The translations under genes and the position numbers were made by a program. Of a DNA stretch of 64,000 nt, positions 2,754 through 38,979 are shown in pieces. This stretch comes from Ruditapes philippinarum. Lineage: Eukaryota. The stretch covers positions 1 to 64,000 of the forward strand of contig NW_026852414.1 of assembly GCF_026571515.1 (NCBI RefSeq), written 5' to 3'. The notes beneath the pieces are model-generated. The model made no database searches, was not told where the DNA came from, and saw only the letters and a program-made list of their open reading frames with translations. The first letter of the stretch is position 1; every line of letters begins with the position of its first letter.

Positions 2754-2827
2754 ATGAATTTCTTAAATATTCGGCGGAAACTTGGAATATTTTCAAGAGC
2801 GGAAATACTTTTTCGAAAATGTGCAAG
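2754..2827 (+). CDS. Variable mini-exon V1: MNFLNIRRKLGIFSRAEILFRKCA + AG, donor GTAAGT
   Basis: ATG, 24 open codons + 2 nt, consensus donor AG|GTAAGT. Homologous to the other array members. Confidence 0.8.
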
Positions 2828-5097: not shown

Positions 5098-5178
5098 ATG
5101 AATTTCTTAAATACAATGTATTCGAAGGAAACTTTGAATATTTTCAAGTGCTGAATTATTGTTTCGGAAAAGTTCAAG
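5098..5178 (+). pseudogene. Pseudo-exon V2 (dead paralog of V6)
   Basis: 7-nt insertion (acaatgt) causing a frameshift, GGA>TGA, donor GT>GG, and a 20-bp tandem duplication over the donor. Confidence 0.8.
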
Positions 5179-6082
5179 GGAGGTGATTAAAGTTCAAGGA
5201 AGGTGATTAAAGTTTATATGTTTTTTTATTATTCATAATTACTTGTGACACATTGGTGCCACATAGTTCTTTATGGAAATATATATCAAATTATATATAA
5301 GTATATCTTAAACAGCGATTTTAAAATACTTGAATTTTCAAAAGAAACAAGAAAAAACTCTTTTTGCAACTTATATGTTTTGGTGTTGAATGTAGCAGGT
5401 AATTCATGTTAGTTGTAATTTGAAGTTAAATGTTGTTTATAATACATACAGTAAAAATAGGAAATCGTGTACATTTATATAATGATATATTGAAACTGTC
5501 GTAATCAAAAAAATAATATTAACATATTTTTAATGTAATGAAACCACTAAATAGATAGATAAATTAATAAATAATTTAATTGTAAAGAACTAGAAATAAT
5601 AATTGATTATTAAATTTACGACTTTAAAGAAATAGTGATAATAGTGAACTTAATCATCTTTATGACATATAACGAATATGTTATCGCAAAGTGCATGCTC
5701 AATTGCATATAATTCACTAACAATTATGAAATGTGGCCAAAGATATAACATAATAATCAAGGGAATCATTTCACAAAAGTTTAATTTTACATTTCCTGTC
5801 AAATAAAAAGCATATTGCATGAATTATTAAATTTGATATGATATGTCATTTACGGTAGCTAAATGTGCGACCTTTGTAACGAATATGCTAAAAGGGGAAT
5901 ATTTTGTTAACATATCATTCGGTTACAGATTAAAACGAAGACTTTTGCTTTCAACATTTGTCAGACATTGGCAACAAATGTGTATTCATTCTTAAAATTT
6001 TCGGATAGACATTGATAACACTAATATTTTGTAATTCGGAAACATAATCACTTTTCATTAAGTAGATTATTTGTTCTACAAA

Positions 6083-6156
6083 ATGAATTTCCGGTCTGTT
6101 CAGAGGAGTTAGAGATTGTTTTCTAGTGCCGAAATGCTATTCAAGAAATGTTTAAG
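6083..6156 (+). pseudogene. Pseudo-exon V3 (dead paralog of V7): MNFRSVQRS*RLFSSAEMLFKKCL
   Basis: 74-nt homolog with in-frame TAG (AAG in V7) and donor GT>GG. Confidence 0.8.
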
Positions 6157-7686
6157 GGAAAAAAATTATTTTAATGTTTGTGTCGGTTTTATAAAACCAT
6201 ATTTTCTTGAACAAGATAGACACATTAACCCATAGATTGTCGTTAAACACGTATTTATAAATATCTTATCTTTTGCACGTTCATTTATCTTTGATCTGTA
6301 ATTTGTATTACAATTGTAATATTGAGTCAGGCATTATAAGTAAGTCACGAGCAAACGACTCACGTATTATAAATATCGTTAAACAATAGCCGGAATTGTA
6401 TATAGTTACTGCATCAAAAAAAGATGGATACTTTTTAATTAAAATTTTAACTATTGTCATGTTTAAATGTTGTATACTGCTTTAATTGGTGCTAGGCGTG
6501 GACGGTCGGTTCGACTTTCCGGTACCATTCATGTACTTTTGCAAACTTCATTTAAAACTGCATAATTATAATTTAATAACCTGTGTGTTGTTATTAAGGA
6601 TGTAACAACACTTATAAAACAATTTCCAAACATCCAAGAATATGTAAAATATGTACTGCAAATGTTTTTACTCATTATAAGTAATTTTTAAATTATATGC
6701 ATTCATTTCTTATTTAAAAATTTGGCGTAGACTTTATCGAAAATAAATTTCTAATTACCTCCCTTTATTAATATGATATGTAAATTCGGTAATAACTTTA
6801 CAAATAATGCTTTTTGGAACTTACAATATTGATAAGTCTTCATATGTGCATCATATTTATGATATAAAACCATAACAAAAATTTGAGTTACAGGATCTTT
6901 AATGTTCATGGAAAGAATGGAACCCCCAAATTATTGACCTCAATAAGCGCTTGTAAGAAAATACTAAGCTCGGAATTATAACGAAATATATATATTTTAT
7001 TAAAACTATCTTAAATTGTTCACCTGTATGTTTATTATTTCAGGGGTTTTACACAGTATCATGAACATTTCTCATTGAACTTTACTATGTGTTTTTTTGT
7101 TTTAATCATTATCTAGTATCATTACGTTATCTATTTTGACATTTTAAAAATAAATAAGAATACTGAGGAATAATGGGCCTTTAGAAATTTTGAATGTTTA
7201 ACGTTCACTATTGAATGCTGGTTTCAAAGCTTAAATGCTGCTGGCCGTAAACAAATATATCGATTACACGAGCTATAAGATGTAATTTCTATCGAAACTT
7301 TGATTTAATTGTAAAGTCTGTGATTTTGATTCATGGCCTCTTTGAGCTTGAAAAATAGTGTCAAACTTGTAATAAGGTTTACATTGTTAAATTGTTAATC
7401 CTAACAGTTATTTGCATGCTCCCAACCTTTCTTCGCTCTTGTTCCCTCTCCCATTTTTTCTTTCAAATTATTTCTAATTGATGTATAAATAAGCCCCACG
7501 CACAATTTTAATTGAATCATGTTTGATGACTATATATTAACCAAATATTAGTTCATTGATCAAATATAGATCACCTTAGTCGAATTTGTCAATATAGAAT
7601 ATCCTGGTATGAAATTGCTCTGACATTTATTCATAAAAAACATGACAATAAACGAAACTTATCATAATTATAGTGTTAAAAGCTAT

Positions 7687-7909: not shown

Positions 7910-7983
7910 ATGAGTTTCTTGAATATACATATGAAATTGCGGCTCTTTGCAAGTGCGGAAATGCTGTTTAAGAAATGTACCAG
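7910..7983 (+). CDS. Variable mini-exon V4: MSFLNIHMKLRLFASAEMLFKKCT + AG, donor GTTAGT
   Basis: 74 nt, open, phase-2 donor. Differs from V9 at 9 synonymous and 3 non-synonymous codons. Confidence 0.82.
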
Positions 7984-9048
7984 GTTAGTTTATAAATAAT
8001 CTAGCAATTATAATTTTTTCTATACATATCACATAATTTTATAATGTGTTTATAATTGTTTTCATGTAAAAATTGATAATATATGAATGCTAAAACATGT
8101 ACTCGACGTTTGAAGTAAAACCCTTAAGATATGAAGAAGTTATTAGAAAAAATATAAGTAGAACTCCAAGTCAAAATGGGATTTTCTTAAACAATAAAGT
8201 TGTTAACGTTTCAAGCTTAATGCGGGTAATGATAAGGAACATGCATTCGAAAAGTACACTAGTTAACAAGTTTTAGTAAAAGTAAAAATTTCTAGGCAAA
8301 ATTTTAAGTTGAGAAAATAAACAGTGTTTAAACAAAATTTTGAACTGTGCTTTGAACATTGGTATAAAGAAACAAATTTATCATATAAGATTTGGGTTAT
8401 AATAAAAACATAAAATTGAAGATTGAAAGAGATGAGAGAAACTTATTAAATTTCTGATAGATACAAACAAATAACAATTTTATGAAAAAAAATATCACAA
8501 TGCTATGGAAGCCCTGGAGGGACATTTGAAATTAATATTTAAAACTTATTGGTTAATTCTTAATATTTAAAATTTAATTCTTAATATTCAAAAATTAAGA
8601 ACATAATACATAAGACGCGGGTATTTGAATTCAACGGTCTCTTGCAAAAGGTTGCTACACGAAGAAAAATTGGCAAATTCGATATAGCTGCTTACAGGTA
8701 ATTGTCATTTTTTATTTATATACAATAAACATTCCGAGAAATATTATATCTCGATTATTATATTTTCATGCTAACAGTTGAAACCATTAAGATATGTTAC
8801 TTTTATCATGGTGCCGCTTTACATTTTATTGACTACATGGTGTCAAAAGCAGTAGTTGAGAAAGTTTACCAATACATTTTGTTCTGGTTGAAGTTTTAAA
8901 AGTGACAGCAATATACCTGCTTGGCAGGGGTTAGGTTTGTCTAACGATAATGTTTAGTTGTTGGTGGTGGATAACAATATTACATGTTTACAGCCCCAGC
9001 CCTTTGTTTTTATAACGCTATATTTCATTTCTTTATATTTCTTTTAAG

Positions 9049-9550
9049 GTCGTAAACATGGAGATCCCGTTGCTGCTTGCCGTTATCATTTTATTGAAAG
9101 TGACTCCTGTATCAACAAATGTGTCATCCCTATTGCCATCTGGAAACGGAAGCACCAGGTTAAAAGTGATTACGCAGTACTTTCATGCTGACTTCAAGTA
9201 CGCACAAATTGTTTTACCACAACATACGTCTTGGTCTCCGTCAGTTAAAGAGGATACTTCGTTGTAATTATTACGGGCGTCACCGTGTCATATATACTCC
9301 AAAAGAAGTAGGAAAAGAATTGCAGTTTAGCGGGGACGGCTTATGGTACCAAGGTGGATGAATACGTTGAAGGATTTGAGAGCTCGTGGACGAATTGATA
9401 CGTCAAACCCTATTCATGCAAAATGCTTGCGATTTTATTTAGCGAATGTTCTTCAAGCGGGACTTTATTGCATTGTATTCACTAGAATTTACACAATGTG
9501 CGACCACAGAAACATGTAGACATGTGCACTTGTATTGGAAGACCAGAAAT
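9049..9550 (+). pseudogene. Transposase/integrase-core remnant of the IS3EU-type element
   Basis: Fragments ITQYFHADFKYAQIV, RLGLRQLKRILR, WMNTLKDLRARGRIDTSNPIHAKCLRFYLANVLQAGL and H*NLHNVRPQK, with stops, frameshifts and deletions. Recognised by eye as integrase-core-like. Confidence 0.6.
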
Positions 9551-9779
9551 AAAATGTTGTTAAATGTACTAGAACTATCAGGTTCTACTGATTATGGTGT
9601 TAATGCTGATTTGTAGGATATTGAATATGAAACAAATCCAGATGATTGAACATTAGACAATAATTTATATACTTTTTAATGAATAAACATTGATGTTCAT
9701 AGTTTTCAGAAGTATGTGCTTTTTATGTTTAACTGCTAGTTAAAATTTCAAGGCCGATCTCGAGTTCGCTTTACTTATT

Positions 9780-10336
9780 GTTAGAACAGGTCAAAAGAAC
9801 TTAAACAATGTGAGCTTTTTGTAGGCAGTACTAAAAACTTGCCAAATGTTCTCCAGAAGGGATCAAATTTAGCGCTTTTTAACCCCAAAAGACAATGTTT
9901 CAACTTTGACCTACATATATGACCTATGATAAGTTTACAAGTTGTTCCAACTGAAAAAAAACATGTAGTGTTCAAAATATTTTTCTTTGATTTGACCTAT
10001 TTTTTACCCCATATGACCCAGATTCAAACTCGACCTAAAGATTATCCACACAAATATTCTCATAAACTTTTAAGTTGTTCAAGTTGAAAATACAGCATTT
10101 CAAGTGTTCTCTATGTTTTTCCTTGATTTCAACTAGTGACCTAGTTTATGACCCCAGATAACCCAGATTAAAAGTTGACCTAGAAAATCAATTAGATAAA
10201 CATTTTGAACAATGTTGATAAAGATGGGATACAAAATGTGACCTGTAATGTGTTCACAAGGGAAATGTTGAGAAACACACCGACAGACGACACACAGTGG
10301 GCAATGACAGTAGCTCACCTTTAAGATGAGCTAAAA
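9780..10336 (-). mobile_element. Degenerate HINE/Helentron-like element nested in the IS3EU-type element
   Basis: Terminal 'agctcacctttaagatgagctaaaaa', gacagacgac microsatellite remnant and tandem gacct/gaccc core repeats. Reverse-orientation relative of 47200-49149. Left edge approximate. Confidence 0.65.
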
Positions 10337-11501
10337 AGGCATCAAGATATATCAAATTTGCTCTTTATTGAATTAAACACAGAGCTCTATTCATTTCTGA
10401 ACAGTTTTCAATGCAAATTGTTATGCATCTAAAATGTTGTTTTAAAATAAACTGGCCAACAAACGTTTGTATACTACTGTTTGATCCACTAAGTCTGTGA
10501 CAAGCTTTAAACCATCTATATTTTGTTTATTTTGCGTTTATTTTAAAAAAAACTCTAACTCAAGTGAGCTAAAATGGCTGAAATTAACAATGACGAGAAA
10601 CCCCATCATTTTCGACATTTTTTAAAAACAGTTGGTTACAAGAAATTGATATCTGGTCACAGGTTCCGTGATAAAAATAGTAGAACAGTACTTTGACAAC
10701 TTTGGTATCATCCCTTATGCTAGTGTTGCCAAAGTAACGCAAAATAACTGTTTCCATCAAATGGAAAATGTTCCTTATGATTTCCCTGAGCATTAAGCAT
10801 TTTCACTGATTTTACAGTGCAGTCAGCAGGTAAACCATTCAGTTATGCACTGCTATTTTAAGACAAATAACAGCAAGAAAAGTATGGATGATCATATGTG
10901 TTCCCCTTACTGATGGCGTATAGATAGGTTATAGTTGTTTGTTAAAAAGTATAATTAAAAAATAAGGCAGCAAAGTCAGTGTAACAACTTTTACTCTTTT
11001 ATTACAGTGACTTATCAAAGTACAAAATCAAAGCTACGTATCTACACTCATCAATGAATAATCGCTTCGGGTCAAATTTCCAATTGATAACAATTTGGGG
11101 TAACTACCTACAGCATACAACATACAAATAAAAGGGTATTCATTCAAAAGTTAAAAACATAGCAAGTTTTGCCATGTGGATGAGAATTGAAGGCTCAACT
11201 AGGCAAACTCAACAAAATGATTATTTTTCAACTAAATAGAACAAGAACTGTCACTATAAATAAATATATGCCACAAATGTGCTTTAAGCATTTGGCAGGT
11301 ACAAAAAACTAACATTTTACATTGATAAAAGTGTTTAAGAAGCAAACATTATTATAATAACCAAAATCACATCATCATCTATAATTGTCAATTAGTTTGT
11401 ATGTTTATAATTATCACAGGGTTACAACATATATGTCAGTTGTATACAATTTCAAATGAAAACAGAACAACGATTGATACCACTACAAAATAAATTTCTG
11501 T

Positions 11502-11715
11502 GCCTCCGTGGTCGAGGGGTTAGAGTCGATGACTTCTAATCCAGGTACCTCTCTGGCGTGGGTTCGATCCCTGGGAGATGCTTTGGTAGTTTAGCGCGGA
11601 GGAAGGTTGTCTAGTACTGGTGTAACTCTCCAGGAACGATGGTTAGGAAACTACCCGCCTATATGACTGAAATACTGTTGAAAAGGGCGTAAAATGAAAC
11701 AAACAAACAAACAAA
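11502..11715 (+). mobile_element. tRNA-derived SINE nested in the IS3EU-type element
   Basis: A-box TGGTCGAGGGG, B-box GGTTCGATCC, 3' 'atgactgaaatactgttgaaa...ggcgtaaaa' and (AAAC)n tail. Confidence 0.85.
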
Positions 11716-11743
11716 ATCAACCATTTTTAAATGAATGTTATTA

Positions 11744-13030
11744 TCATTTTACCAAGAACCAAACAATTACTATCAACTTAAAACTAAATATTTGATATGG
11801 CCCATTCAATACAAAATGTTGCTGCGATGAAGCTTCTGAACAATTATAAACGTTTCCATCTCTTTCTAGGAAGACTGTGTTCTGTACTTCTGTTCTAGAA
11901 ACCACATACCCATCTTCAAACGGATCACTTTCATGAATTATCTTTCTCTGGACACCCAGACGCATTAAAGCACCGCAATATTGATTGGCAAATACTTCAG
12001 ATTGTTCTTCAGAATATAATGAGTGCTTAATTTTGCTGTACTTTATGTTAATAGTTCTGTCGCCCTTTTCTACAGGGACTCCATTTATCATAAAACTTTT
12101 GTTCTCCTTTTTTATCTCAGGTATATATGGCACTGTGACGCATACCAACTGTTAGCTCTAAATACTCTGTGAAACTGCATGGATTTTGGTCTACATCAGT
12201 TTAACTGTCAATCACTTGTCCTGATGCTTAAGCCAATGACAAGTCGTAGTCCTTCACACTGTCCATGTTACTTTCTCCGTCCGGGAAATAGTTACTTAGC
12301 GCTTGATATCTTATTCTTTCTACTGCAAGTCTTTCCCCAAATGTGTAATACATCACGCGTGCTTATCCACCTTTTGCTTCAGTATCAACTCTGTACTTTC
12401 CATCTCGGTAGTTCTGCCATCCCATTTTCATTTTATATGCACTGCTTTGTCCTCTGCCTTTCTTTACAGCAGTTGCCTAAAATATATTAAAGCTTTTATT
12501 AACAACCAATTTCATACAATTTTGGCCTAGAGGGACATACTCTATAACTGATGTCAAACTAAACAACCTCCAAAACTTAAATAATAGAATCTTTTAAAAT
12601 ATTATAACTTAAATTAAAAGTTTAAGCTATACATTCCAAATCATTATCGATAAAATCAGCTGTTAAAATATGTTTGCAGTACAATGTACTGTAAAAATAA
12701 TCTATGTAGAGTTGTTGCTGTACAATTAATGGGTTGAAGCAATTTATTTCAGAACGCCTCTAAAATTGATAAATTGTGGTAAAATGAGGTTTCGTTCAGC
12801 ATAGATTCTTCTTTGACATTGTATTTATTTATCATTTTAATTTCATTGAGCACAAACTTTATGTTTCGAGAATATAATCTGCTATATGTACGGAGTTCCC
12901 CTTTATATCTACATCTAAAGTTTTGTTTACCAAACCTGTGGCAAGGTTTTTGCAAACTGCAGGCATTTAAAAGCACACTATTACAACCTATAAGTCTTGT
13001 AATGATAATTTCAAATGCAAATCAATGATC
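11744..13030 (-). pseudogene. Remnant of the second (accessory) gene of the IS3EU-type element
   Basis: Protein-like minus-strand ORF pieces at 11744-12148 and 12749-12976, convergent with the transposase remnant and inside the TIRs. Confidence 0.45.
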
Positions 13031-16000
13031 ATACCAGTAGGATGATTGTAGCCCTAAAACACTCGTCTTAAAATCAAGGCTTTTCATTTAGATTTACAGT
13101 ACCTAAATCCACAAGGACAGCATGTCCAGCCTGCTTGATTGTAATGTTTATTTTATAGCAGACGCTGTGAACTGCATCAAAAATGGACTATTCAATGTAG
13201 GTATAAACAAATGTGAACAAATGTACCAAGTTATTTTATATTCCCCTAAGCCCAATTCGGACCTTTAACCCCTTCAATCCGGGACGGATTGTCTTTTGCA
13301 ATAAATAAATAAACCCGCACAAGCCAGTCCTCACCATGAAATTAAGTGTGTGTGCGTGTCCTAGTGTGATTTAAAACAGATTTTCTTGTATATAAAGTCC
13401 AACTTACTTTACTTCCTTCGCTACTCGTATTCTCGCTGCCCAATCTGTCAACGGAATGGTTTCCCGCGTCCATTTTTAATGATAAGATTTAATTATTAAA
13501 TATTAAAAATTTAATTTTAAATATTAAGAATTAAATTTTAAATAATAAGTTTTAAGTTTTAGATATTAATTTAAAATGTCCCTCCAGGGCTTCCATACAA
13601 TGCACATGCTTCTTACATAATGTTATTAAATACAAATATAACTACATATTTGTTTACTTGAATTTTACGTATCAAAATAAAATTAGTCAACATAACATGA
13701 CATTAACTGCTAATAATAGCAGCTCCTTCCATGGTCAAAAAAGCAATCTATAAGAGACGACGCCGCTCACAGGCGTCGCCAATGATCTTTTATCATTTGA
13801 ATTAATAAGAAGATGTGAAAAATGTGACGCAACTCTGCGCGTTTCGCTGGATTATGTTTTTGTATCTTTCATTCAACTTTTGGGGGTGTTATGCAAGACT
13901 TTACAGTTGCTCCTTAGAAGTTACTTAAATACTATATTCCCATATGTCTTGAAGAGCAGTTTTGAATGTTGAAGGATTTATTTTTAGGCCAAAAGAATGA
14001 ATAAGTGAGTTAATATCATGATCAAGAATCAAGTGAAATAAAACATGAAATAAATCATTATAACAAATAATATTATCAACGGAAACATAAACAAGCTTGC
14101 AAACGAATATTAACATGAACATTTTTGAACATACATCAAACACATTTTCTCTAGAATTATGTCAAAAATTCCTAAACTTACATAGATACGAAAGTGGTTT
14201 AACTCATTGCTTTACAAATGATTATTACCCATCCAGTGCGCATTTTTAATTTGAGAAAAATTTATAGTATTTTTATACTTTTTCTAGATTAAACTTGACA
14301 TGAAAAGTGATCTGAATGTATTAGCAAATGTATTTATGGACATGTTAAATAACATTAAAACTATTCAAGGACATGTTAAATGACATCATAATTACATATA
14401 AACGTGGGAAGCAATTAAAACAACCTGTGTTAATTTCAGAATACTGTTACCATATATAAATTGATGTCCAAAACTGCTAGCGATAATTGAAATGACGAAG
14501 ACTAATGTACAAGCGAAACGCGAGATTTTATTCGTCGAAAAAAATATTTTTTTGTCATTTTCTTTTCGTCGTTTATGCAAAATGTTATCTTTCATTCATC
14601 TTAGTTGCAAAAACATATATCTAATACATGAATTATTGTTTCCTTTGTTTCTATTCGCCTGTCTGAAGTCGTTGCATGTTCATCCAGCTCCAATGCTCCC
14701 ATTTTATCAAATATAACAGAATTATTATAAAAATTATCAAATATCTGATATTTTTGAAAACCTACAAATTGAATAATTAGATAAAAACAACCAAAACTTC
14801 TTACAAATTAAAATAACATGTAACTTTATGTTCGTACTTTAATAGTTGTTGAAGGAAATGCATGTTGGGATACTCAGCATTCTAAATTAGAACTTTTCAA
14901 CTTTCAAACTGATAGAGATATACATTTAAATGATAGCAAATATATGTATAACGTGAAATTGGCGACTACCATTTTCTGTTTCAGTTGAGCTTAATTTACC
15001 TTTTTCTGTATAATTATAGTCCAGCTCTTTGAATTCTAACCGAAATTAGGAACGAAACTGTAATTAATTTTAATTGTTCAGGTAATTATTGCATGTTAAT
15101 TTGTAATCACTTTACTCTTGTGACGATAGGTTTTGTTAACGTTTTTCTATTTTTATATTTCTTTATTGATTGCTGTGATAGAATAAAACAGTATCGTGTT
15201 TAGTTTAATCAAACCAATGGCTACCATTTTGTTCTGGAAGAAAAACCCTAAATGGGTTTATTTCAGTGTCGTGTTATTTCTTAAAAAATGTTGTAGGTCG
15301 TTAATGGAAAAGCAAAATGTTTTCAATATGCACAACCATATTTTCTAAAACAAGCACTCTTTGTCGAAGTTTACTTTGCGAATATACCATTCTAGTAACA
15401 GGAATTATTTTAATTATTCAAAAATTATATTCAACAAACACATTATCATTTAATAGTTCTTTTGTAATACTATGTAAACAGCAAAAGCTATAAATATAAA
15501 CAATTTTATTCTTATTTGTGCACAGAACTGGTAATGCTGAAATCCTTAAAAATATGGCATTTATACGTTTCTGAAAGTTTCTTTATGTCATTTTATTTAT
15601 TTTAGAATGGTTAATGAAAAATCAAATATCAGTTTTCTTGTTTTGTGCAAATATTATATTTCCACAAATTGTAGTGAAAAGAAAGGATTATGAATTGTTC
15701 AGTAAAATTATTTTGCGTTCTAGTTTTTTAGTTTTATAAATTGTTTTTTTTAATAACTTACAACCTCAAACTGGTAAAAATCTTTACGACTCTTTTTTAT
15801 GAAAATATGAAAATATATTACTTATCTGTAAATGTCAATAAAGGTGTGCTTTCGACAATGCAGAAAGTCAAGCGGGAGTCGTTTATGAAAGACAGGTTTT
15901 CAAAGTTTTGCCAACTTGGCCAAATAAACATTTACATATTGCAGTTGATAAAAACATTAAGTATATAATTTCAATAGAAATCAAGTACATCACCACTCTA

Positions 16001-16910
16001 TTGTTATGTATATAGCTTCTAAGCTGACATTTCCATGTTTACTTAGTGTCTTGTAGCCGATATGTATTTTATTGCAGGTTTGTATTTTTAAAAAGCAGAT
16101 ATATAATGATTTAGCTCTCGATTGACATTTGGATACAATTTCTCATTTGTTTTGCTTCTGTGATACTAAATAACGGCTTTTGTACTTAGTAAAAGCAATG
16201 AAAGTGTAAAAAAGAGAAATATTGCTACTCTGATTACATCCCTCGATTATCCAATATATCTTTAATGTTTTAAATGTCATATTACTAATGGCTAACAGCA
16301 TGTATACTACTTCTGGCGAGTAACAAAATGAAAAAAAAGTAGTTTAATGTTAATGTAATTAAAGTAACCTCATGCATATGTGATGAGTGTCATACATTTG
16401 TAATAATAAAGGATGAAACGGTTTATCATCACAAAACAAATAATGTCAATAAAACAGCATTTTTTTCCGGGATTTAAGTAATTTCCTTACAATACACAAA
16501 GAGAAGATATCACCCACTTCTTATACCTGACACCTTATACCTTGGTAAAATTCTCTCTTTAACAGACAAAAAACGAAAAGAACATTACAGGAAGAAGTAA
16601 ACTGTTTTCTTTTACAATAAACGTCACTATGCGTGAGTATAAATAAAATTAGTTATAATTGCGAGATATAATTGTAAATGTATTTTTGTTATTGAGCTAA
16701 TAGAACAAGCATTAGTCTTTGAAGCTGTTTTAAGGCAACATTGGCGTCTTACGCACTGATTAAAACACGAACTTAACGACAAGTTGTCTAGTTAATTAAC
16801 TAAGATAGGAATACATAACTGTGTTCTTCGAGATATTTTCACAAACTAAAAATAAAATAAAATTTTGAGCATAGTGCCGAATGCAAGTCAACCATTAAGT
16901 TTGTTAGAAT

Positions 16911-16984
16911 ATGAATTTCTTAAACATTAGACGGAAACTTGGAATATTTTCAAGTGCGGAAATACTTTTTCGAAAATGTTCAAG
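16911..16984 (+). CDS. Variable mini-exon V5: MNFLNIRRKLGIFSSAEILFRKCS + AG, donor GTAAGT
   Basis: 74 nt, open, consensus donor. Confidence 0.85.
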
Positions 16985-18985
16985 GTAAGTGTATGCATTT
17001 TGCCTAATGTAAAACTGGTCCTAGTGATGCGCATAAACTTTCACTAAATTAAGATACAAAATGTATGTTCAGTTCGACTATAAATTTGACGATTTGTCAT
17101 CACAGTAATAGGGCGGTTAAAATATATAGAATAATGTAGATACTAGTATACCTTTGAAATTCAGAGTTTGCTTAAATTTTGAAGCATCGACTCTGAGAAT
17201 ATTACCAATCACATCAAGCAGGTGGCTGAAACATACAATATCGAACAGATAAACGTACATGTATAATGTTTCACTTTGATAAAAGTTTTACTGGCTACGA
17301 TTTCAAAAAGTCATTTGTTGCCAATTCATTTGAATTATGCAGGATTCATTTTATATCATTAAAAATCATAAACAGACTCGATCCATCATCAGAGTCTGCT
17401 ATTACAACGTTTTCTTTTTATCTTTTGTTGTATTGCTCTCGGAGCACCTTCAAATATATACTCTTATTTCAGTATGCAATTGGCATATTTGTTCATAGAT
17501 TGTCTGTGATATTGCCACGATCATTTACAGAATCTGATCATTTTGTTCAAATATTTGTATCGTGCGAACATGCAATAACAAATTGTTTTTGAGATAAGTT
17601 TACATATTAAGTTTATCTATCTTTATTCAAAATTTGAATAAATCAGATGAAGATGGCAGATTTCGTAATAACATAAAGACTTTCGCGACAGAAATTAAAA
17701 ATGAGAACAATGAACAACAAGCAAGATCTTTTCGTTCGTTAATTCTATCAGAAATTAATGTATAATTTCTGATCTTTAACAGAAATGATTATACAAAGGC
17801 TTTGCCGATTATGTTAACAAATGGCTAGAAAGTGACAAGAGAGCTCTTATTTCTGTCACTTTGATCTGCTTAAAAAGATATTTCGAAATTTTCACACTTT
17901 TAAATATTTAGTTGCTTTTCTTGGACTAGGTAGATAACATTAAATCAAGTTTTTACGAATGTTACTACAATTTCAGAAAAAGTTAAATCCAAACGGACGA
18001 ACCAAATAATATAAATCATGGTGAATCTCCTGCTTCCATTTCAGTGTTTAATGATCATTATTTTTAGAAATGGCCAGAGAGTTGTCTACTGTAACTGATA
18101 TAACATCAAATACTTTTTGTCAAATCAATATTTGTCATTGCTCGTATTGTTTATAACAGCTTTTCCATTGTGAACAGCAATCATTCAAAAGGGACTAATG
18201 ATTATTAAAAATCTGATTTCACCACTTGAGATGATGTGACGAAAACATAAATGTTTTTTTCCCATTGCATATAAAGCCCAAGCAATTAAGCGTCCATTGA
18301 ATGTTGCCTTTCCTTGTTGGATTTTGTTTACAAATTTTGACTTCTTTAAAATAAAGCCCGTCATACTAGATGGTTATGATAAACGTAATTTGTTGCTCAA
18401 AAGCAGGGGCTGTGTGGCAGAAAAGGAACAGTAGAACACGACACAAAAAATGCATTTACAATTGGTTCACCGCAAACCTTTTATAAATATTTTTGCCGGA
18501 AGAAATTATCAATTTCGAATAAATTACGTTTGAAATCATGTTGATTTATTTAGAGACAGAAATATATGTGTACATAGTATAATGCGGATTTAAATCATAT
18601 TAAATTCTAATAACACCTGACACCCCTAGACATTTCCTTCTTGAAATATTGAGCGCCATACAAATAAACGTATTTATGTAAAATGATGTTTAGTATTAGC
18701 AGCCATATATAGAGTAAAATGGTTTGCATTAATGTGCATTAATTCAAATAACCCTAGGGAAAAGCTGCAAGCTCATGATTGTTTTTGATACATAAAACAG
18801 ACATTGATCCTATAATGTAACGCCGTCTTCAAAAGTCAATCAATTTAGACACGACAATAACGAAAAATAATCTGGCTAATTAACCCAACATGGAATATAT
18901 AATTGTATTAAATAATTCTCAGATTAGGTGTATTCTATGTGAAAACTTTTACAGAAAGGAATTTGATTTTTAAGCTTCGGATAAT

Positions 18986-19059
18986 ATGAATTTCTTAAAT
19001 ATTCGAAGGAAACTAGGAATATTTTCAAGTGCTGAATTATTGTCTCGGAAAAGTTCAAG
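18986..19059 (+). CDS. Variable mini-exon V6: MNFLNIRRKLGIFSSAELLSRKSS + AG, donor GTAGGT
   Basis: 74 nt, open, phase-2 donor. Confidence 0.78.
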
Positions 19060-19698
19060 GTAGGTGATTAAAGTTTAATATTTATATGTTTCTTTTATTA
19101 TTCAATATTACTCTAATGAGCTTCTTTGTGACACATTGGTGCCACATACTTCTATCTGGAAATATATCTAAATATGTATATAAATATATCTAAAACAACG
19201 ATTTTATAATACTTAAATGAATGTTTTAAAGTAACAAGAAAACACGTACAAATTGTTTTGCAACTTATTGCAATATGTTGCAAATCAAAATAACGAATAT
19301 GATATCGCAAATTGCATGCTCGAATGCATACAATTTATTTATAATTGTGGACAAACGTATAACATAATAATCAATGGACTCATTTCATAAAATTTTAATT
19401 TTACATTTCCTGTCAAAGAAAAAAGGCATATTGCATGAATTAGTAAAATTGACATGATATGTTATTTACGGTAGCTAAATGTGCAACCTTTGTAACGAAC
19501 AGGCTAAAAGGGGAATATTTTGTTAACATATCATCCGGTTACAGATTAAAACGAAGACTTTTGCTTTCAACATTTGTCAGACATTTACAACAAAAGTTTA
19601 TTAATTCTTATAATCTTCTGATAGACATTGATAACACTAATATTTTGTAATTCGGAAAAATAATCAGTTTTTATTAATTGGAATATTTGTTCTACAAA

Positions 19699-19772
19699 AT
19701 GAATTTCCTGTCTGTTCAAAGGAGTAAGAGATTGTTTTCTAGCGCCGAAATGCTATTCAAGAAATGTTTAAG
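19699..19772 (+). CDS. Variable mini-exon V7: MNFLSVQRSKRLFSSAEMLFKKCL + AG, donor GTAAGC
   Basis: 74 nt, open, phase-2 donor. Confidence 0.82.
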
Positions 19773-22700
19773 GTAAGCATTATTTTTATGTTTGTGTCGG
19801 TTTTATAAAACTGTTGTTTTTTCACAAGATAAACGCTGTCGCATAAACATATACTTTTGGTTGCTGTTTAACACATTAACACATATTCGTGAATAGTTTT
19901 TTTTGCACGTCCATTGACATTTGCTCTGTAATTTGAATTGCAATTGTAACTTCGAGTCAGTCATTATTAGTAAGTCAGAAGCAAACGACTCAAATATTCT
20001 AAATATCGTAAAACCATGACCGGAACTTTATATAGTTACTGCATCGAAAAAGACGGATGTTTTAAAATTAAAATTAAAACTATTTTCATGTTTAAATGTT
20101 GTGTACTGTTTAAATCGGTGTTAGGAGCGTTCAACTTTACGGTACCATTCATTCACAAGCTCAATCAATGTGAGCTTGAAATAATTCAAATTTGCTGTTT
20201 TAGGCGTTGTTATGGGCTTCGTTTATCTCGTTTACATTAACGAGGTGTTCTTTTGCTTCGTATGCTTGTTATTATATTTTTCTAGTCCTTCGGGATCATT
20301 GATGCCAGCACTATTAAGTGTTGAGAATTGAGTACCGCTCAAGCCCTTGCTAGGGGGAGTGAGGGATGTTGCACTTATTCATTATCCTTCATGTACAGAC
20401 TCAATTAAATCGATTCTGCAATTCTTATGTAATTTTGTTGTTATTAATGCTTCCGAGGGATCACTTTGTTTCCAGATTTTTATTTACAATACTGCCAGTC
20501 AGTTCATAATGAGTCAAACAAAACAGAAAATTCACTTTCTGAGATGAACTTTTAAAGAACAGCAATATTATCTGATCAATTATTGCATGTGAATATACAA
20601 GGTGTGTCTTAATTAAGTATATGCCTGTATTAAGCTTGCTTTAAAAAATTATTTTGCCATTTTATTCGCTAAATGTACGTCATTTCACAGAATAATTATT
20701 AGAGAAATATCATTGGTTATTTGAATAGCTGTAGAGTAAGTTAACATATGTTTTAATCGAATTAGGCATAAGTAAAATCATAATTAACTATACTCTATTT
20801 GGAGATATATGAAAATACATGTGTTTGAAATCGGTTTAGGTCATTGCAGGATATACATATTGTATGTTGTATTATGTATATGTTGGCAAAACAAGATTTT
20901 TCGTAGTAACTTGACTTTGAGAAATAATTTATTAATAATATTGCCAACCGAATTTGTCTGAAATTGACTTATTATGATTGTTAAAGCAATCAGTAATCAA
21001 ATACATCGTTAAAGCGTATTTTTACGAAGAAACGCATCATATCGTTCAGCAGAATGTTATCATGTGTTACAACATATCTTCGACAAATTGTGTGTATGAT
21101 ACTTAAATAACAATTTGTTATTACAACATTGTTTTGTCAACCCAGTATTTCATGTTCAATTATATACAATATCATGCAGAATCTTCTAATATTGTTTAGA
21201 TGTTTAAGATATGATCAGCATGAGTTTGGCACATGACAATTATATAATTAACATTTGCAATAACTATCATTTAAAATGTGCACTGGTACAAGAAACTATT
21301 TTATATACACTCTGTATATAATACTTTTTATATAATACTACATTTGTCAATATAAGGTGACTTATAGGTCCATTGGGCCGCGTGTATATTTTGTTACTTT
21401 TAGTACACATGTATCATATCATTGATTTTACACATGTCACTATGATAAATAAATTTCTTATCTTACCTCTGAAGAAATGCAAAATTTAAAAGAAATCTTA
21501 GCATGAATATTCAGAATATACAGAAAGTTTTAATGTGACATGAAATCGCATAATGCTGTGCTTCTTTTTTTATTTCAAAGTTGAATTGACTTTATTTCAA
21601 AAGATTGACTGTTTGATAGTGGAAAATGTTCACAGTAAAATGACAATATGTCTAAAAAATAAAAACAAGACTCCCTATTCTTTTTTATAAATTGAACGTT
21701 ACAGGTAAATTACAATGGATATTTATAGAAATTTATTTGGCCAAGTTATTGATCATTCAAGTTTATCATGAAAGGAATTACGGAAAATGTACACTCAATT
21801 TAACTTTTACCTGTTCCCTTAGATTGGCATAATGTCACTTTATCTATACAAATGTACAATTTTAAAAATAATGTTACTGATGTTTACATTTTAAAGCCAT
21901 TCTGTTTGTCAGTTTTTATTAACGCTAAACGTTGAATATTGTTTCACCTTGTACAGAGGAGGTTTTTTTATAACAATAATAGTATCGTTTGCATTGTTTG
22001 GTCTTTTACATCTAAAGTTCAAATAGTAATACTTTTCGTTGGACAATGTTTGCAAAGCAAATGTCTAATTGTTTCCTTTAAAGCTTTTTATGCTGGACCG
22101 GGGATACAAACAGTGTCTTTATTAGCTAAATATCAAATAAAAAAACAGAGTAATAAAATTGAGAGATCAGCTTGGAACAAATATTACATAATATATTTTA
22201 TAGATATCATCTCATCTGCATTGTAGTTAATTTACAATACAGCGAAAAGTAATCAGTCACTGCTATCAAGTGATTTCACGTGAAAGTACTCTATTTAAAA
22301 TTCTGAGAACAATAAATGTAACAATGCACATATATGTAAGTGGTGTTTTTGTCAGAAAGCTACTGTATATCAACATAAGATTTACGTCACTGCACAAGGT
22401 TCCTAACTTTTTTGATATACGAGCCTTTAGAAGAGCATTGACCGTGGTTTCTAAAACTATTTATGCACCCAATAGCTTTTAGATGTCATTTAATCATCGT
22501 CATCGTTAGTCATCTAATTTTAGCATGTACTTTATGACAAATAATTGTACTAATTGATATAAGAATAAGTGCCATTTTATATTACGATAGCTATTTTAGA
22601 AAATTTGGAAATTGCAATTACAATCATACAAAATTCATTTCGATATTTCAGTGGTCTTTATTTCGAAGAAATATATGTTTTAGATATGAGGGAAACCTGG

Positions 22701-23499
22701 ATTAATTTCAAATTCATTATAAATGAATTGCCACGTTGCCAGCAGAATCTAAAGAACATGTACGAACAAATTTAGCCTTTACGTTACATACTTTACAAAT
22801 CGTGTAGCATTATGAAAATCAGATAAATAAATGAGAAAAAATTGACAATTATAGGTTAATTTGGTCTTCTCTGAAAATGTTCATCTTAAGTGTGCAAAGT
22901 TTTAGATATTACATATCTTCTCTGTGTGTAGTCAGATTTTAAATTTGCTAGGGGACTGTATAGACTGTACTAGTATTTCACGAGTTTTAAATTTGAAAAT
23001 AACATACCTTTCAATATTTTCAGTTGCAAAGTTTTCATTGAAGTTTACATAATCCTGACGAAGAATACTGTCCTCTCATTTCTGTAGTGAGTGGAAGTGC
23101 TTTAATCATATATCGTGTGCTGGACTGTATGTATTTTATAAATTCATTGTGTAAATAAAGACAATATGTCTTATTGTACTCGAGGGACTTGTTGTATAAA
23201 TTTTAATTATACTTTTTCTGATAAATAAAAGACAGCAAAAAAACCTTGTTGAAACCAGATATGTAATGTTTTCAAAACAAAGCATTCGATATGACAATGG
23301 CAGATGCATTCAGAGAGTGAGAAGAGTGGGAGAAGCTAAATGTTTGTGAACTTATTTAAAGCAAGTGAGTTTTCTTTCAAATTAAGTGTACCTTAGCAAG
23401 TCATATTTCTTAAAAGGACAAACTTAAACCGAAGAAAATAACAACTTTGTTGCGAGTTGAAACGATATGTAATTATTTTACTATAATAAGACTATAACT

Positions 23500-23576
23500 C
23501 TGGCCTACGCAAAGATTGTTAACAGAAATAAAAGTATATTCTTTAGTACTGAAATGTTAGTCAAGAAATGTTCAAG
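23500..23576 (+). CDS. Divergent mini-exon V8: (CTG)AYAKIVNRNKSIFFSTEMLVKKCS + AG, donor GTAAGA; start ATG absent
   Basis: Open frame and intact donor. CTG GCC stands where paralog V13 has ATG GCC. May be a pseudo-exon or use a non-AUG or internal start. Confidence 0.45.
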
Positions 23577-24963
23577 GTAAGAATGGTATGATCCTTTGCA
23601 AATTGCTTAGTGTTTAAACTTGACACCTGGTTTCATCAAGATGCAAATTAATACTTTTGTGAGCAGTTATCCTTATTTTGTAGGTTTCTTTCTATCTTGT
23701 TACTGACCAAAAGTTATCCCTACAAACCCATTATCATACATGTGAGTCAAATGGCATAAAGAAATGTTTCAACGAAAAGATAAAATTTTGTGAATGTAAC
23801 GTATTTTGTTTTTTAAGTGTGTTACGCTGAGCATTTTGTAAAATTTAAGATATTGGCTCTTTAGTTATGTTATTGACACATTAAAAACATTCTGGTATTT
23901 CAATATCACACAAAACACCTTAGCATCAGTTAACAAGATATATCATTGACAAGGGGATCCCTTGCTCTGTTATCTTTGCATTAAAAAGTTCTCATTTAAC
24001 GTTGGAGGGTTTAACTTATATTATTACATTATAATAGAATAAATATTTGTGGAATAAAAAAATTCATTGTTATAAATGGGTAGTAGTAGACTTGTCCTGA
24101 TTAATCTGATTCGCTTGCACCTTTACTATATATTGTTTTAATACTTGAATATTAACTTGAATGTTACACAATTGTATCGATAATTGATATTGGACACTCA
24201 TATCATTCATTCTGCTGAAGATGTATGAATCGTTTCGTTTCCTATATCAATGAAAGAAAATATGTGTAATATTATTATTCCATAGCCTGGCGTCGAGGAT
24301 TATACCGATCATTTTATATTATACAATCAGTAATCTTGATAACATATAGACATGTTTTCAGTACTTAAAACAACAACATGCTACTATGTAAAGCTTTAAA
24401 AGTAGGACCAATTTACTAAGTATGTTCTAATAGCACTTTCAATTTAAAAGTTGTAAAATATTTTTCTAAAGCGTAGAACATTTCACTTACATTGCATCAC
24501 CTTTGAAGTAAACGACATAGACATGCAACAGGAGAGAAATCCTTTGCAAATGATATATCTAAACGATTATTTACATAATTATACTTTACGTTGCTGATCA
24601 AGTAAATCGCATGTATTAAAATAACACATGTAACTGTAAGCAATTTTATCAATTTATATGACAAGCTGTGCTAATAAACTACGACAAATTCAATCTTTTT
24701 CTAAAAAGCCACGTTGCTATGCAAACCAATTTATGAAGGCATTAATAGACCTTTGGAAATAAGTATCGCTTATTATGAATAGTTTGTCATCTGTAACTTG
24801 CCTCTATTTAATAGCAAGCTTGTTATTATTTTGTCAGGCTTTTAAAGCGGAACATTGTGAGGAAGTGTCAGTGTATTAATGTCTGACTTCGAAATTTGAT
24901 TTGTTTCTGAAATTTTCAAACTATTTTAAAACAATAAAAAGGCTTGTTGGATTCGACTTTAAA

Positions 24964-25037
24964 ATGAGTTTCTTAAACATTCGCATGAAACTGAGACTTT
25001 TTGCAAGTGCAGAAATGCTATTTAAAAAATTGTCAAG
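24964..25037 (+). CDS. Variable mini-exon V9: MSFLNIRMKLRLFASAEMLFKKLS + AG, donor GTGAGA
   Basis: 74 nt, open, phase-2 donor. Upstream module shared with V4. Confidence 0.82.
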
Positions 25038-26056
25038 GTGAGATTTTAAAACATTTTTATGAAATGTTTATCTTATTAGAATCATGCTCATTTTGCAGTT
25101 TGCATGTACAATAGGTGTTAGAGAAAGGTCTTATACAACTGATAATTTTAAACTTACATATTTCTTTATACATGTAGTTTGAATTTTTTTTTTAAATTCA
25201 AAGACAAAAGCAGCTGAGATATAGCTTTATACACTTTAATGAACAACTTTCATAAATAAAAGTATTTTGCGCACAACAGGAAACATTTTATAACTGATTG
25301 TTCAGACTGAATATGCTATAAATCCAAAATTGATGCACAAAAGTTAATAAATAAGAAAAAATCCGAAAGTTCAAAAGAAAAACCTCGGTGATAACATATA
25401 TTTTTCAGATACGACGCGATAGATCGACAAAATAAATATGTAAAAGAATGAATATTATTATAATTATGAAAAAAAAAGTTTCAATCAAACATTCAGAAAA
25501 GTTCATTAAACAAGAAAAAGAAGCTTTAAAGATCCTGTATGTTTTGTCATTGATATTGTTACCGTGTGTATTCCACACTTGCAAAAAGTTACATATGTAT
25601 ATAATTATGCAAATAAACAATTTTCAAACATCGAAGAATATGTAAAATGTGTACTGCAAATATTTGTGCACATTATATTTAATCAATAAATTATAAGCAT
25701 TCCTTTCTTATTGGAAAATTTAACTTAGAATTTATAGAAAATAAATTTCTAATTTCCTCCCTTTATTTACATGAAATGTTAAATTCGGTAATACCTTTAT
25801 AAATAATGCGTATTGGAACTTACAATATTGACAAATCTTAATTTGAGCATCATATTTATGAAATAAAACCATGAAAAAAATGAGTTACAGGATCTTTAAA
25901 AACTTATATTATTAAATATGCTTCCCATTCAAATGAAATAAGCATAAAATTTGAATATATTTGATATTCAGTTTTATATCCAAAGTTTTAAATTTTATTT
26001 TACTAAAGCTTCAAACTTATGATTGTTCTTTGAGACATGGTACAGATGTTAATATT

Positions 26057-26665: not shown

Positions 26666-26748
26666 TCCTAGTTTTAACTGATATTCTCCTTTCACTTAAC
26701 CAGATGTCTTACTTCTATGCTATATACAATCATATGAGAGAGTATGAA
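26666..26748. repeat. 83-bp perfect direct repeat, copy 1 (copy 2 at 28747-28829)
   Basis: tcctagttttaactg...gagagagtatgaa is identical at both positions. Confidence 0.97.
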
Positions 26749-28746
26749 TTTAATGTAATTTATGTATGTATATTCTAGTATTCATAATGTGATATTACAG
26801 TCAATATCATGTGCGTCGAAAACGAAAAACTGTCTGTAAATACTCTGTAGGGTAACAGCGTAATTTTATATTTTTTCATTGTAAATTTGTTTTTATATAC
26901 AAATATTTAAACGAATGTGCAATGTTTCAGAAAGGAAAATAACATATTTGTGTCAAAATTCGTGTATAACTATTTATGTTGTAATCGGGATAAAAAAAAA
27001 CAGGGGTGATACGAGAAAGTTACTTAAACTACAAAATGTTAATTTTAAGAAACTAACACCTATCCTTAAACTTATAAACACATGAAACAAAGTTTGATGT
27101 TCAATTACAATAGTTTTTTATGCGTCTTTTGTTAAACATTTCTCTTTTCTCATGATGTGCATGCATGTACCTTTTTTACTTAAGAGTTTTCATTTGATTT
27201 GTTGGTATTTATATGTTTGTTTGTTTTCAATGTTTTATTTTCTGTTCCAAACATTCGTTGTAGATATTTCGGAAGAATTTCCTCGAATCTCACGAGCCGG
27301 CCACGGGAGCGAAAGCCATTGGTCATATTCTGAGAATTTGATCTGCCGTGTTGTTGTGTTTTCTGGTCTTAAGGGGTTCGTTGACTTAAATATGGCAAAT
27401 ACTTTGCCTTCGAAAGACCATGCTTTTTCGATTCGTTTGGGATCTTTTAAACGTAATGACATTAAAGCTTGCTGATTGGAGTGTGTAAGATCTTCATTCA
27501 AATATATTCTGGTTCCTTTAAGTGACTTTGCATTTTTCATTATATTAATTTTCGTTTGCCTTCTTACGAATTTTACAATTATTGGACGGTTACTGCCTGT
27601 CTTGAACTGACCAATTCTATGTGCAATGTCGATTTCTTCGTCGAGAACAACCAATCCGAGATTGTCTTTACACATTTTCTGGAATTGAATTTTTGTCTGT
27701 AATGAAGACTGTTGGGGGGAATCTTCTTTAATTCCCGTGATACGAAGGTTATTCCTTCGACTGTATTGTTCTTGATCATTTGCATTTTCTTTTAATTTTT
27801 CGTTTTCTAATTTTAATATTTTTAATTCATTGTTCGTCTTTTCTTCTGATTTTTCTATTCTTGTTTCTATAACATGTTTGTTTTCGCTTATTTCGGAATT
27901 AAGTTTTGAAGTGGAGGCTGATTTGTCATAAATTTCATCTTCTAAAATTTCTAATCGTTTGATGACTGATCCTAATAATTGTTCCTTCATTTCTTCAAAT
28001 GTGTCTTTTATTATGTCTCTGATGAATGACCTGTCATCTTTTGTTAAAACGTTGTTGAGTTTTTCATCTATTTTGTCTAGTTTTTGTTCAAGTTTCATCT
28101 CTGCGTTCGTTTCTATCAATTCTGGTGATGCCGCGGTTTTTTGTTTTTTACTTTGTTGTTTTCTTTGATGAGACTTTGAGTTATTTGGGTTGTTTTTTAT
28201 TCGAATGTCATTTCCTAAACTTTTATTTACTGGGTATGTTTCTTCTGTTGTTTCATTTAAGGAGCTAAATGAGTTTGTTATAGCACTAGAGTCTAAGTCG
28301 CTACAGCTAGTGGTGGATTCTTTTTTTCGTTTTGGTGTTCCGCTTTTAACATTCATAATGTATATGATCAAAAGTCACAAGCGATCAAGCAGAGTACGTG
28401 ATAACCGTTAGTTCCCGTTATATCTATCCTATAATAGTCATAACTGTTATACCTAGCCAAGCGTGACGATTTTTTGGCAATACTGTCTATGTGCGATGTG
28501 TTCAGTATTATCACGTGAATCATGCGCTTTACACCTATTTATTAAATGTATACTAAAAAGTTCTGTATAAATATCACCATAAATACTTTATAGATTTCAT
28601 AAATGTTCATACCATTTTGAAGCTATTCCTTTATATATTTAACATACATAAATTCCTTTTTAAGCGTTCAGTAATTCACACAAAATCCGCTGATTTACAT
28701 GATAGACATTTTTACGTGTTTACATTTTAGAACCGGAAGTAGCATG
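26749..28746 (-). mobile_element. ORF1-only (HAL1-like) non-autonomous retroelement, 1998 bp
   Basis: Bounded by the 83-bp repeats. Single ORF1-like CDS, no ORF2. ACTTCCGG at the 5' end and ATTAAA at the 3' end. Confidence 0.7.
27235..28356 (-). CDS. LINE ORF1p-like protein (coiled coil + RRM + CTD; L1 ORF1/Transposase_22-like), 373 aa from first ATG
   Basis: Uninterrupted ORF. A coiled-coil region precedes EQYSRRNNLRITGIKE, IDIAHRIG, RPIIVKF and IYLNEDLT motifs. Confidence 0.88.
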   Translation of the reverse strand: MNVKSGTPKRKKESTTSCSDLDSSAITNSFSSLNETTEETYPVNKSLGNDIRIKNNPNNSKSHQRKQQSKKQKTAASPELIETNAEMKLEQKLDKIDEKLNNVLTKDDRSFIRDIIKDTFEEMKEQLLGSVIKRLEILEDEIYDKSASTSKLNSEISENKHVIETRIEKSEEKTNNELKILKLENEKLKENANDQEQYSRRNNLRITGIKEDSPQQSSLQTKIQFQKMCKDNLGLVVLDEEIDIAHRIGQFKTGSNRPIIVKFVRRQTKINIMKNAKSLKGTRIYLNEDLTHSNQQALMSLRLKDPKRIEKAWSFEGKVFAIFKSTNPLRPENTTTRQIKFSEYDQWLSLPWPAREIRGNSSEISTTNVWNRK

Positions 28747-28829
28747 TCCTAGTTTTAACTGATATTCTCCTTTCACTTAACCAGATGTCTTACTTCTATG
28801 CTATATACAATCATATGAGAGAGTATGAA
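28747..28829. repeat. 83-bp perfect direct repeat, copy 2
   Basis: Identical to 26666-26748. Confidence 0.97.
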
Positions 28830-35587: not shown

Positions 35588-36899
35588 AAACAAAATTAAT
35601 TTTAATTAGATATCTTGATAAAGATATTGAAGCATGTGTGTATCATTAAATCCTTCTTCAAAGAATGAAATATGCAAATGATTTGATTGAATTGGATATA
35701 TACTTTCAATAACATTTCAATTAAATTTTTGATTACACTAAATATGTAATGGTGAACAGTGATGAATCTTTAGATCTATCACAAATATACATAGTATATA
35801 GCTTCTTTGCAACTGGTGAAGAAATGAATTATAAAACTCAGCTACATACACTTATCTATCTTTAACCAGGGTTACCCTTTAAACCGGTCAAATTGTTCGT
35901 TCAATTCCTTTTTGCCGTTTCTCTATTTATATTCTCTCTATAATCTAGAAAACCTACAATTCAGAAACGGGACATTTTCTGTCTTATATTACATTTTATG
36001 TTTATAAAAATACGAAATAGATAGTTTCTCATTTTATAGAATGTTTAGTTTTAAACATTATGTTACATTATGTTACTTTAGGGAAACAGTTCGTAAACGA
36101 TTGTTCTTTTACCTTTATTTTAAAGGATAAATGCTCCGAAACGATTGTCAATCTTTGTTTCATTCGCTAACACCTTTCAAATACATTTTACTGTTTGTAA
36201 TTAAGCTTTGATTATGCCAAACAATTTGAAGCTGTAACATGATTTAATTGATCCGACAATCATTTCGTGTCAACATGCAATCATAATATTACTAAAGTAA
36301 CAGTTAATTTCTTCTTATAATTTATACATCTTTATTGATTATTTTAATTGCTTGGAACACATTGATATGCTATCATATATATAAAGATCGTCTTGACGTT
36401 GTGAAATTTTTACTCTTTTTAGCTTAGGTGTGCTTTTCACTTAACTATTTGGTAAACGCTTCTATATAATAATTATTCTCAATAAATATAAAGTATTAAT
36501 GTTATTTCAAAATACATTATTATTCGTATATATCTTTACTCTTTTTACGTAAGATGTGTTAGACGTAAGATATAAGACTTGCAAGAATAGATGAATTTAG
36601 ATGTTTCACTTGGGAAATTATATTTATGTAAGAGATAAAAGTATTGTTATTAGTAATGTTTAAGGTGCCGATACTTTGCAACCTTTAAGTAAGCTTTTTG
36701 ATAACGTGCGTGTTTTTCGCTTATCAAGACAGGTCAAACAAATGTCTTTAAGATATGAAGCGTGTTATGTAATGTGTTATTACAACATGTAGGAGAAGAT
36801 CATCTGTAGGCTTTCGTTATCGTTTTAATTCATCATATAATATTAGTTGCTCTCTGACACAATTAGACATTCGTACGGATATTTTCTTTTATAATCTAA

Positions 36900-38674: not shown

Positions 38675-38979
38675 GTAATTATCCGTCAGAATTTACCCGT
38701 GACGTTCAATTTATAAAAAAGAGTGAAACATACTTTTTATATTTTAGGCTGATTTATATTTATATCAAAAACATTTTCCAATTAACTTTTGGTCAATGAC
38801 AATAAGAACAATCAATCTTTTGAAATATTTAGTCAATTCAATTGAAATTAACTGTGAAAATATGAGCAAATCACAAATGAGTCAGAAAGCAAAACTCTAG
38901 ATTTCCTGTGGTATCTGAGCAATTAGAAATTTCAGTTGTTGATAGAAAAACAACTAAATAATGATTGATTATAATTGTA

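Follow-up and report, generated by a model that had tools for sequence, protein, structure and literature searches.

A 96.5-kb contig of the clam Ruditapes philippinarum (NW_026852414.1, referred to here as C901) carries a row of mini-exon units, short same-strand elements with their own start codon and splice donor, which have been under purifying selection as codons read from the ATG. The window, meaning the whole stretch of DNA analysed here, comprises the first 64 kb of this contig, in a genome of 1.4 Gb and ~30% G+C. On sequence grounds, the row is probably a set of alternative coding first exons belonging to one gene, in which many N-terminal peptides would be joined to a single shared downstream exon.

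Anatomy and census of the mini-exon units

Units were found by repeat search, pattern scan and genome-wide profile searches. The plus strand of C901 holds 16 intact-looking units and three decayed ones in a single row, 13 of which lie within the window when the decayed V2, V3 and V8 are counted (Table 1). The same pattern scan gave no match on the minus strand of C901 and one unrelated match in 89 kb of a second contig, C15122. Nine further units were located outside C901 by the genome profile search, on C15122, C14770 and C14427.

Each unit consists of an ATG with a purine at -3, followed by 24–32 codons plus two bases and then a GT donor; in the N-type units the ATG and 24 codons plus two bases run into a consensus 5' splice site (AAG/GTAAGT and variants, the slash marking the exon end). 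The ATG and the purine at -3 are present in all 25 units compared (A in 18, G in seven), the GT donor in 24, with AT in the remaining one, and G at intron position +5 in 22. The five exon lengths observed (74, 77, 80, 83 and 98 bases) are all of the form 3n+2, so that indels have added or removed entire codons and every unit ends in the same splice phase. The encoded peptides share a common design, with an MN[FL][FL] start, a basic stretch followed by a serine, and a second basic pair near the end. The basic-Ser stretch reads KRLFSS in the K-type units and RR-x-SG in the G-type.

Purifying selection in the ATG frame

Translation of the units was first proposed in a sequence-only reading of this DNA from a hand alignment of V4 and V9, for which it listed nine codons with synonymous differences (TTG/TTA, AAT/AAC, ATA/ATT, TTG/CTG, CGG/AGA, CTC/CTT, GCG/GCA, CTG/CTA and AAG/AAA), three replacements (H/R, C/L and T/S), no indels, and heavily diverged flanks. 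Recomputation returned identical lists, with 16 of 75 bases differing between 7910–7984 and 24964–25038 and no indel; position 25037 is the final exon base of V9, directly before GTGAGA. The flanks are indeed no more alike than shuffled sequence, with identities of 0.62 upstream (-100 to -11; shuffled mean 0.56, maximum 0.66) and 0.60 downstream (+11 to +100 past the donor; shuffled mean 0.59, maximum 0.67), as against 0.79 in the exon. V4 and V9 are old paralogues, not positional partners in a recent segmental duplication.

When 16 random substitutions were placed on V4, retaining the observed transition/transversion split, three or fewer changed codons without a stop were obtained in none of 100,000 trials, the mean being 10.3 changed codons. 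Nei-Gojobori counts for the V4/V9 pair gave proportions of synonymous (pS) and nonsynonymous (pN) differences of 0.87 and 0.065, respectively, in the ATG frame, and pN exceeded pS in both alternative frames (+1: 0.26 vs 0.14; +2: 0.27 vs 0.08).

This constraint is not peculiar to the hand-picked pair, but holds family-wide. Over all pairs, the ratio of nonsynonymous to synonymous divergence (dN/dS) in the ATG frame is 0.21 among ten N-type copies and 0.11 among seven K-type copies; in the other two frames of the same 17 copies it is 1.2–1.8, with stops in most copies. The ratio in the ATG frame thus lies well away from 1, and neither the other frames nor the flanks are equally conserved. When the kinship of these copies was allowed for by a tree of all 17, parsimony placed 33, 27 and 69 steps at the first, second and third codon positions, respectively (chi-square p = 6e-6).

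DNA similarity between old paralogues is confined to about -8 to +88 around the ATG. In many independent pairs, BLAST similarity begins 1–8 bases before the ATG and stops 5–12 bases past the donor, and the same comparison detected no second conserved block within 1.5 kb on either side of the units. Synonymous divergence among copies reaches a pS of about 0.55–0.87, and 24 of the 25 units keep ATG, open frame and GT. These patterns support the view that the units have been kept by selection as protein-coding sequence in the ATG frame, as a record of past selection and not as direct evidence of expression.

Duplication and decay

A segmental duplication links block A (653–6532, plus strand) to a partner at 14835–20152, with 82–87% identity overall and stretches of 90–99%, and accounts for the pairing of V1 with V5, V2 with V6, and V3 with V7. 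Because the introns of these pairs are as similar as the exons (90–99%), the pairs are uninformative on selection. V2 and V3 have diverged only ~5–6% from their intact partners V6 and V7, and each carries an ORF-breaking lesion (ORF, open reading frame) together with a GT to GG loss of the donor. Non-functional copies would decay in frame and donor together, as in birth-and-death turnover, with new cassettes arising by segmental duplication and unused ones decaying.

Table 1. Mini-exon units on C901 and related contigs (splice donors are written with a slash at the exon end)
Unit	Contig	Position	Strand	Type and peptide	Donor, lesions and remarks
V1	C901	2754–2827	+	intact N-type (MNFLNIRRKLGIFSRAEILFRKCA + AG)	AAG/GTAAGT
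V2	C901	5098–5185	+	decayed copy of V6	7-base insertion giving frameshift, then stop; donor GT to GG
V3	C901	6083–6157	+	decayed copy of V7	AAG to TAG stop at codon 10; L4R; donor GT to GG
V4	C901	7910–7983	+	intact N-type (MSFLNIHMKLRLFASAEMLFKKCT + AG)	CAG/GTTAGT
V5	C901	16911–16984	+	intact N-type	recent duplicate of V1
V6	C901	18986–19059	+	intact N-type	AAG/GTAGGT
V7	C901	19699–19772	+	intact N-type (MNFLSVQRSKRLFSSAEMLFKKCL + AG)	
V8	C901	23518–23576 (start also given as 23503)	+	partial/decayed	3' half and donor AAG/GTAAGA kept; no ATG, 5' half diverged
V9	C901	24964–25037	+	intact N-type (MSFLNIRMKLRLFASAEMLFKKLS + AG)	AAG/GTGAGA
V10	C901	29660–29733	+	intact N-type	AAG/GTAACT
V11	C901	54980–55056	+	K-type, 77 bases (MNFLKVTRNKRLFSSTETLCKKDDS + AG)	closest relatives on C15122
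Probable divergent member	C901	57818–57897	+	80 bases (MNFLKCSGPLNSRRQSFDMLFKRRDT + AG)	AAG/GTACGT; from pattern scan
First G-type unit	C901	63942–64000, running past the window end to 64021	+	G-type (MNLLGCTQRDTRRLSGSSLINRCGFV + AG)	
Further G-type units	C901	66559–66641, 72678–72757, 75688–75764, 80439–80518, 83648–83727	+	G-type	
Divergent candidate	C901	89058–89155	+		
N-like units	C15122	starts 6394, 11013		N-like	
K-type units	C15122	starts 60836, 79967, 136126, 142164, 147383, 158422		K-type	
One unit each	C14770, C14427				near-copies, perhaps from the other haplotype

Alternative coding first exons as the probable organisation

The row shows several features of a first-exon array: it runs along one strand, its units have their own ATG and donor in one phase, and they have been under purifying selection. 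Short protein-coding first exons of this kind would arise through repeated local duplication, each unit forming a cassette of first exon and, most likely, its own promoter. Each transcript would then take a single unit and splice it to a common exon 2, which would supply the last base of a split AG-N codon for Ser or Arg. A single gene would in this way give rise to about 25 proteins that are alike except for ~25 residues at the N terminus, a basic, helical peptide that plausibly serves in targeting or regulation and offers a kinase-type Ser site. No conserved promoter element was visible upstream of the units in the paralogue comparisons.

An AlphaFold2 model from a 17-row alignment places a single helix over residues 2–29, with a mean pLDDT (predicted local distance difference test score) of 84, which is weak evidence that the N-terminal peptide folds as one helix. 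By inspection of the translations, a signal-peptide hydrophobic core (~8 or more residues) is absent and charges are spread along the whole peptide. The peptide looks cytosolic, non-secretory and regulatory.

Several results weigh against this organisation. The search for a downstream partner exon, over C901 to its end at 96.5 kb and over C15122 at 160–194 kb, was unsuccessful, a Pfam scan of 138 plus-strand ORFs of at least 42 residues (C901 84–96.5 kb and C15122 160–194 kb) gave no credible match, and the regions that follow the two rows share only repeats by DNA and protein comparison. The RNA data cover the three units V5–V7, with 4–25% read of each of four runs from unspecified tissues. 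Over 16700–22600, depth on V5–V7 was 0–3 in the four runs, the sole run with reads on these units covered introns too, and the listings for the interval contained neither loose ends nor joints at the donors. At the protein level, a profile of the 17 N- and K-type units matched only four low-complexity sequences among 1.84 billion cluster representatives, and word searches with a 23-row family alignment (with a first row of 58 and then 424 residues) returned nothing and one match at E = 2; these blanks are weak, given the length windows, the 50% clustering and the restriction to 8,000 candidates.

The long ORFs on C901 and on C15122 at 160–249 kb are only transposon ORFs and a minus-strand gene. 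C901 itself ends 7.5 kb past its last unit. Its end matches contig C9726 at 95%, over 1.9 kb only, and C9726 has no family members; the match is accordingly more likely a copy of a repeat than a sign of an allelic contig.

Two intervals near V7 drew RNA reads of their own. A short repeat at 20246–20639 has very high depth in all four runs, up to ~8,300 in run X4. Most of its reads extend into sequence that does not match, with a switch of strand at many joints, which looks less like a local exon than like a dispersed repeat with strong transcription. C901 has a related copy at 86.66–86.98 kb. At 21428–21821, depth is 5–25 in the four runs, from reads that fit over ~30 bases (21582–21612 and 21682–21711) with consistent unlike sequence on both sides. 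This signal looks like short, repeat-derived matches to abundant transcripts from elsewhere.

Other explanations for the row

Tandem duplication could instead have produced separate genes, with each unit the first exon of one of them and followed by downstream exons of its own. The family occupies at least two long contigs, and the ~50-kb gaps between the C15122 groups (at 6–11, 61–80 and 136–158 kb) could hold gene bodies; on C901, a 25-kb gap separates V10 from V11. Seven units, however, lie within 27 kb, and the 713 bases between V6 and V7 leave no room for private gene bodies. Nor does a second conserved block accompany any unit, and protein-level self-comparison of C901 gave only repeats and further mini-exons. 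Between and after the units, the only coding-looking ORFs are transposon remains. Separate genes are therefore considered unlikely. Stand-alone, unspliced small ORFs, encoding micropeptides of 25–27 residues that end at an adjacent TAA, TAG or TGA, would fit the codon-level selection equally well, and 20 of the 25 units do have such an in-frame stop right after AGG, which also counts against a spliced exon. This closure arises because the donor consensus in this phase reads AGG TAA/TAG/TGA. Of the five units that lack an adjacent stop, four have nonetheless retained GT and the +5 G. This G falls past the point where a small ORF would stop, and yet 22 of 25 units have it, in a window whose G+C content is ~30%. 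Elsewhere, synonymous sites have come close to saturation, whereas 22 of the 25 units agree to the base on AGG as their final codon; while this final AG/G is nearly invariant, other Arg codons vary freely among CGG, AGA, CGA and AGG, as fits a splice site and not a C-terminal Arg. The loss of T from GT in V2 and V3 is neutral here, since it alters the would-be stop codon too. With the +5 G kept, GT retained in stop-less units and the last codon fixed as AGG, a splice donor is favoured over a stop, and micropeptides seem very improbable.

A third possibility is that the row is a relic of once-coding first exons now out of use, the selection signal belonging to the past only. The near absence of RNA reads on V5–V7, the lack of any database protein carrying these peptides, the three decayed copies and the one AT donor would all agree with this. 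Against it stands the almost complete retention of ATG, frame and GT at high synonymous divergence, whereas the disused V2 and V3 gained several lesions at only ~5–6%; disuse of the whole row is thus quite unlikely. That the unit is a non-coding repeat with an incidental open frame (regulatory element, RNA gene or mini-exon of spliced-leader type) is disfavoured; the sequence-only reading had found such a repeat hard to reconcile with the codon differences. A unit that is short, repeated and terminated by a donor-like site does resemble spliced-leader genes. Yet the substitutions follow a three-base periodicity and selection acts in a single frame, findings that show the units to be coding, bear the earlier argument out and set the units apart from spliced-leader mini-exon genes with their non-coding leader. 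Only whole-codon indels occur, one splice phase is common to all copies, the start context is conserved, and copies are confined to four contigs of the genome, leaving a non-coding origin scarcely credible. Alternative coding first exons of one gene remain the probable organisation.

Synapsin as a candidate host gene

A possible link to synapsin was hinted at by shared MNFL and RRxS/RLFSS motifs, by the position of the synapsin gene near a contig end, and by an open upstream frame without an ATG. Clam synapsin exons lie on C12225 and C7862. The first known one (C12225:41824, minus strand) opens domain A with MNFLRRRFSSGDL, and only 6.7 kb of contig remain beyond it. The mini-exons resemble synapsin domain A (PF10581, Synapsin_N) in MNFL and in an R-[RL]-x-S or RLFSS motif. 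PF10581, however, matched none of ten mini-exon peptides at E up to 10, and against the family profile clam synapsin reaches 1.7 bits, a score that many of 5,000 shuffles exceed (up to 12.0). The 6.7 kb preceding synapsin contain no family members, and C901 and the synapsin contig show no overlap at their ends. Synapsin as host gene is a lead only, having failed the Pfam and profile tests and with no contig link to C901 found. In-phase AG sites occur at -139 and -70 upstream of the synapsin MNFL Met and were not relied on; the -70 site lies inside sequence conserved as coding in other molluscs.

It is improbable, on these sequence comparisons, that the single clam synapsin gene, or another presynaptic phosphoprotein, draws 25 or more N-termini resembling domain A (MNFL ... 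basic-x-Ser) from the row. Were it so, one gene would yield a large set of differently regulated vesicle-binding heads.

The synapsin locus has a further feature of its own. In C12225:40298–43324, within a minus-strand ORF at 41570–41983, the frame upstream of the MNFLRRRFSS Met is open for 53 codons, and its protein sequence is conserved in other bivalves and in gastropods (...AKISF[ST]NFR..G-MNFL). A Met (MA.KEDLF...) precedes this stretch in several other species, but the clam assembly has no upstream ATG. Molluscan synapsins may, from this conservation, start before domain A.

Other elements in the window and on C15122

A retroelement-like insert at 26666–28829 is bounded by a perfect 83-base direct repeat (26666–26748 = 28747–28829) and includes a minus-strand ORF (27235–28371) of 373 residues from its first ATG, with no Pfam match. 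At 51217–53937 there is a broken long interspersed nuclear element, with an endonuclease ORF (Exo_endo_phos_2, E = 1e-13), frame breaks, and then a piece of reverse transcriptase (RVT_1, E = 2.5e-8). About 11 tandem copies of a 145-base unit, with 81–84% matches, occupy 47291–49104, where the 290- and 435-base rows reach 49101–49104 and the 145-base row stops at 48888. Segmental duplications between V10 and V11 (36475–38958, 42398–43691 and 44191–46282, together with 41225–42535 vs 49390–50914) have about 60–100% translated identity and no family units inside.

On C15122, downstream of the K-type units, the minus strand at 167666–173302 carries a 1,879-residue retrotransposon polyprotein ORF, and more retroelement ORFs lie at 212–216 kb and 229–235 kb in the interval 160001–249011. 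Minus-strand ORFs at 194–208 kb contain PHD-like and FHA-like motifs, recognised by eye only, which suggests a neighbouring gene.

Comparison with known systems

The organisation is closest in outline to the vertebrate protocadherin and UGT1A clusters, which share with the clam row same-strand tandem first coding exons, each with its own ATG and donor in one phase, and birth-and-death turnover. The variable exons of those clusters are, however, large (about 2.4 kb in Pcdh) and encode whole extracellular or substrate-binding domains, whereas the clam part is ~25 residues. Their constant exons and promoter elements are known; in the clam there is no visible upstream element and the constant part was not found.

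Short unique N-terminal exons are a feature of multi-promoter genes such as PDE4D and its Drosophila counterpart dunce, KChIP and Kv-beta, whose loci span 100 kb or more. The likeness here would lie in the use of alternative first exons to encode short N-terminal peptides bearing targeting or kinase sites. The unique exons of these genes are mostly unrelated to one another, whereas the clam units are ~25 homologous duplicates. PDE4 itself was rejected as the host: its UCR exons are on C12605, C12311 and C11408, and the 113 kb upstream of UCR1 on C12311 has no family match.

The mini-exons offer clean test cases for annotation, as gene finders and the databases searched do not contain them. Their architecture is of the known variable-first-exon kind, and what appears unusual, with the literature consulted on the synapsin lead only, is the number of units, their tiny size and the non-secretory nature of the peptide. 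If the reading as alternative first exons is true, the clam row would extend diversification of the protocadherin kind to a short cytosolic module for targeting or regulation, in place of an extracellular domain.

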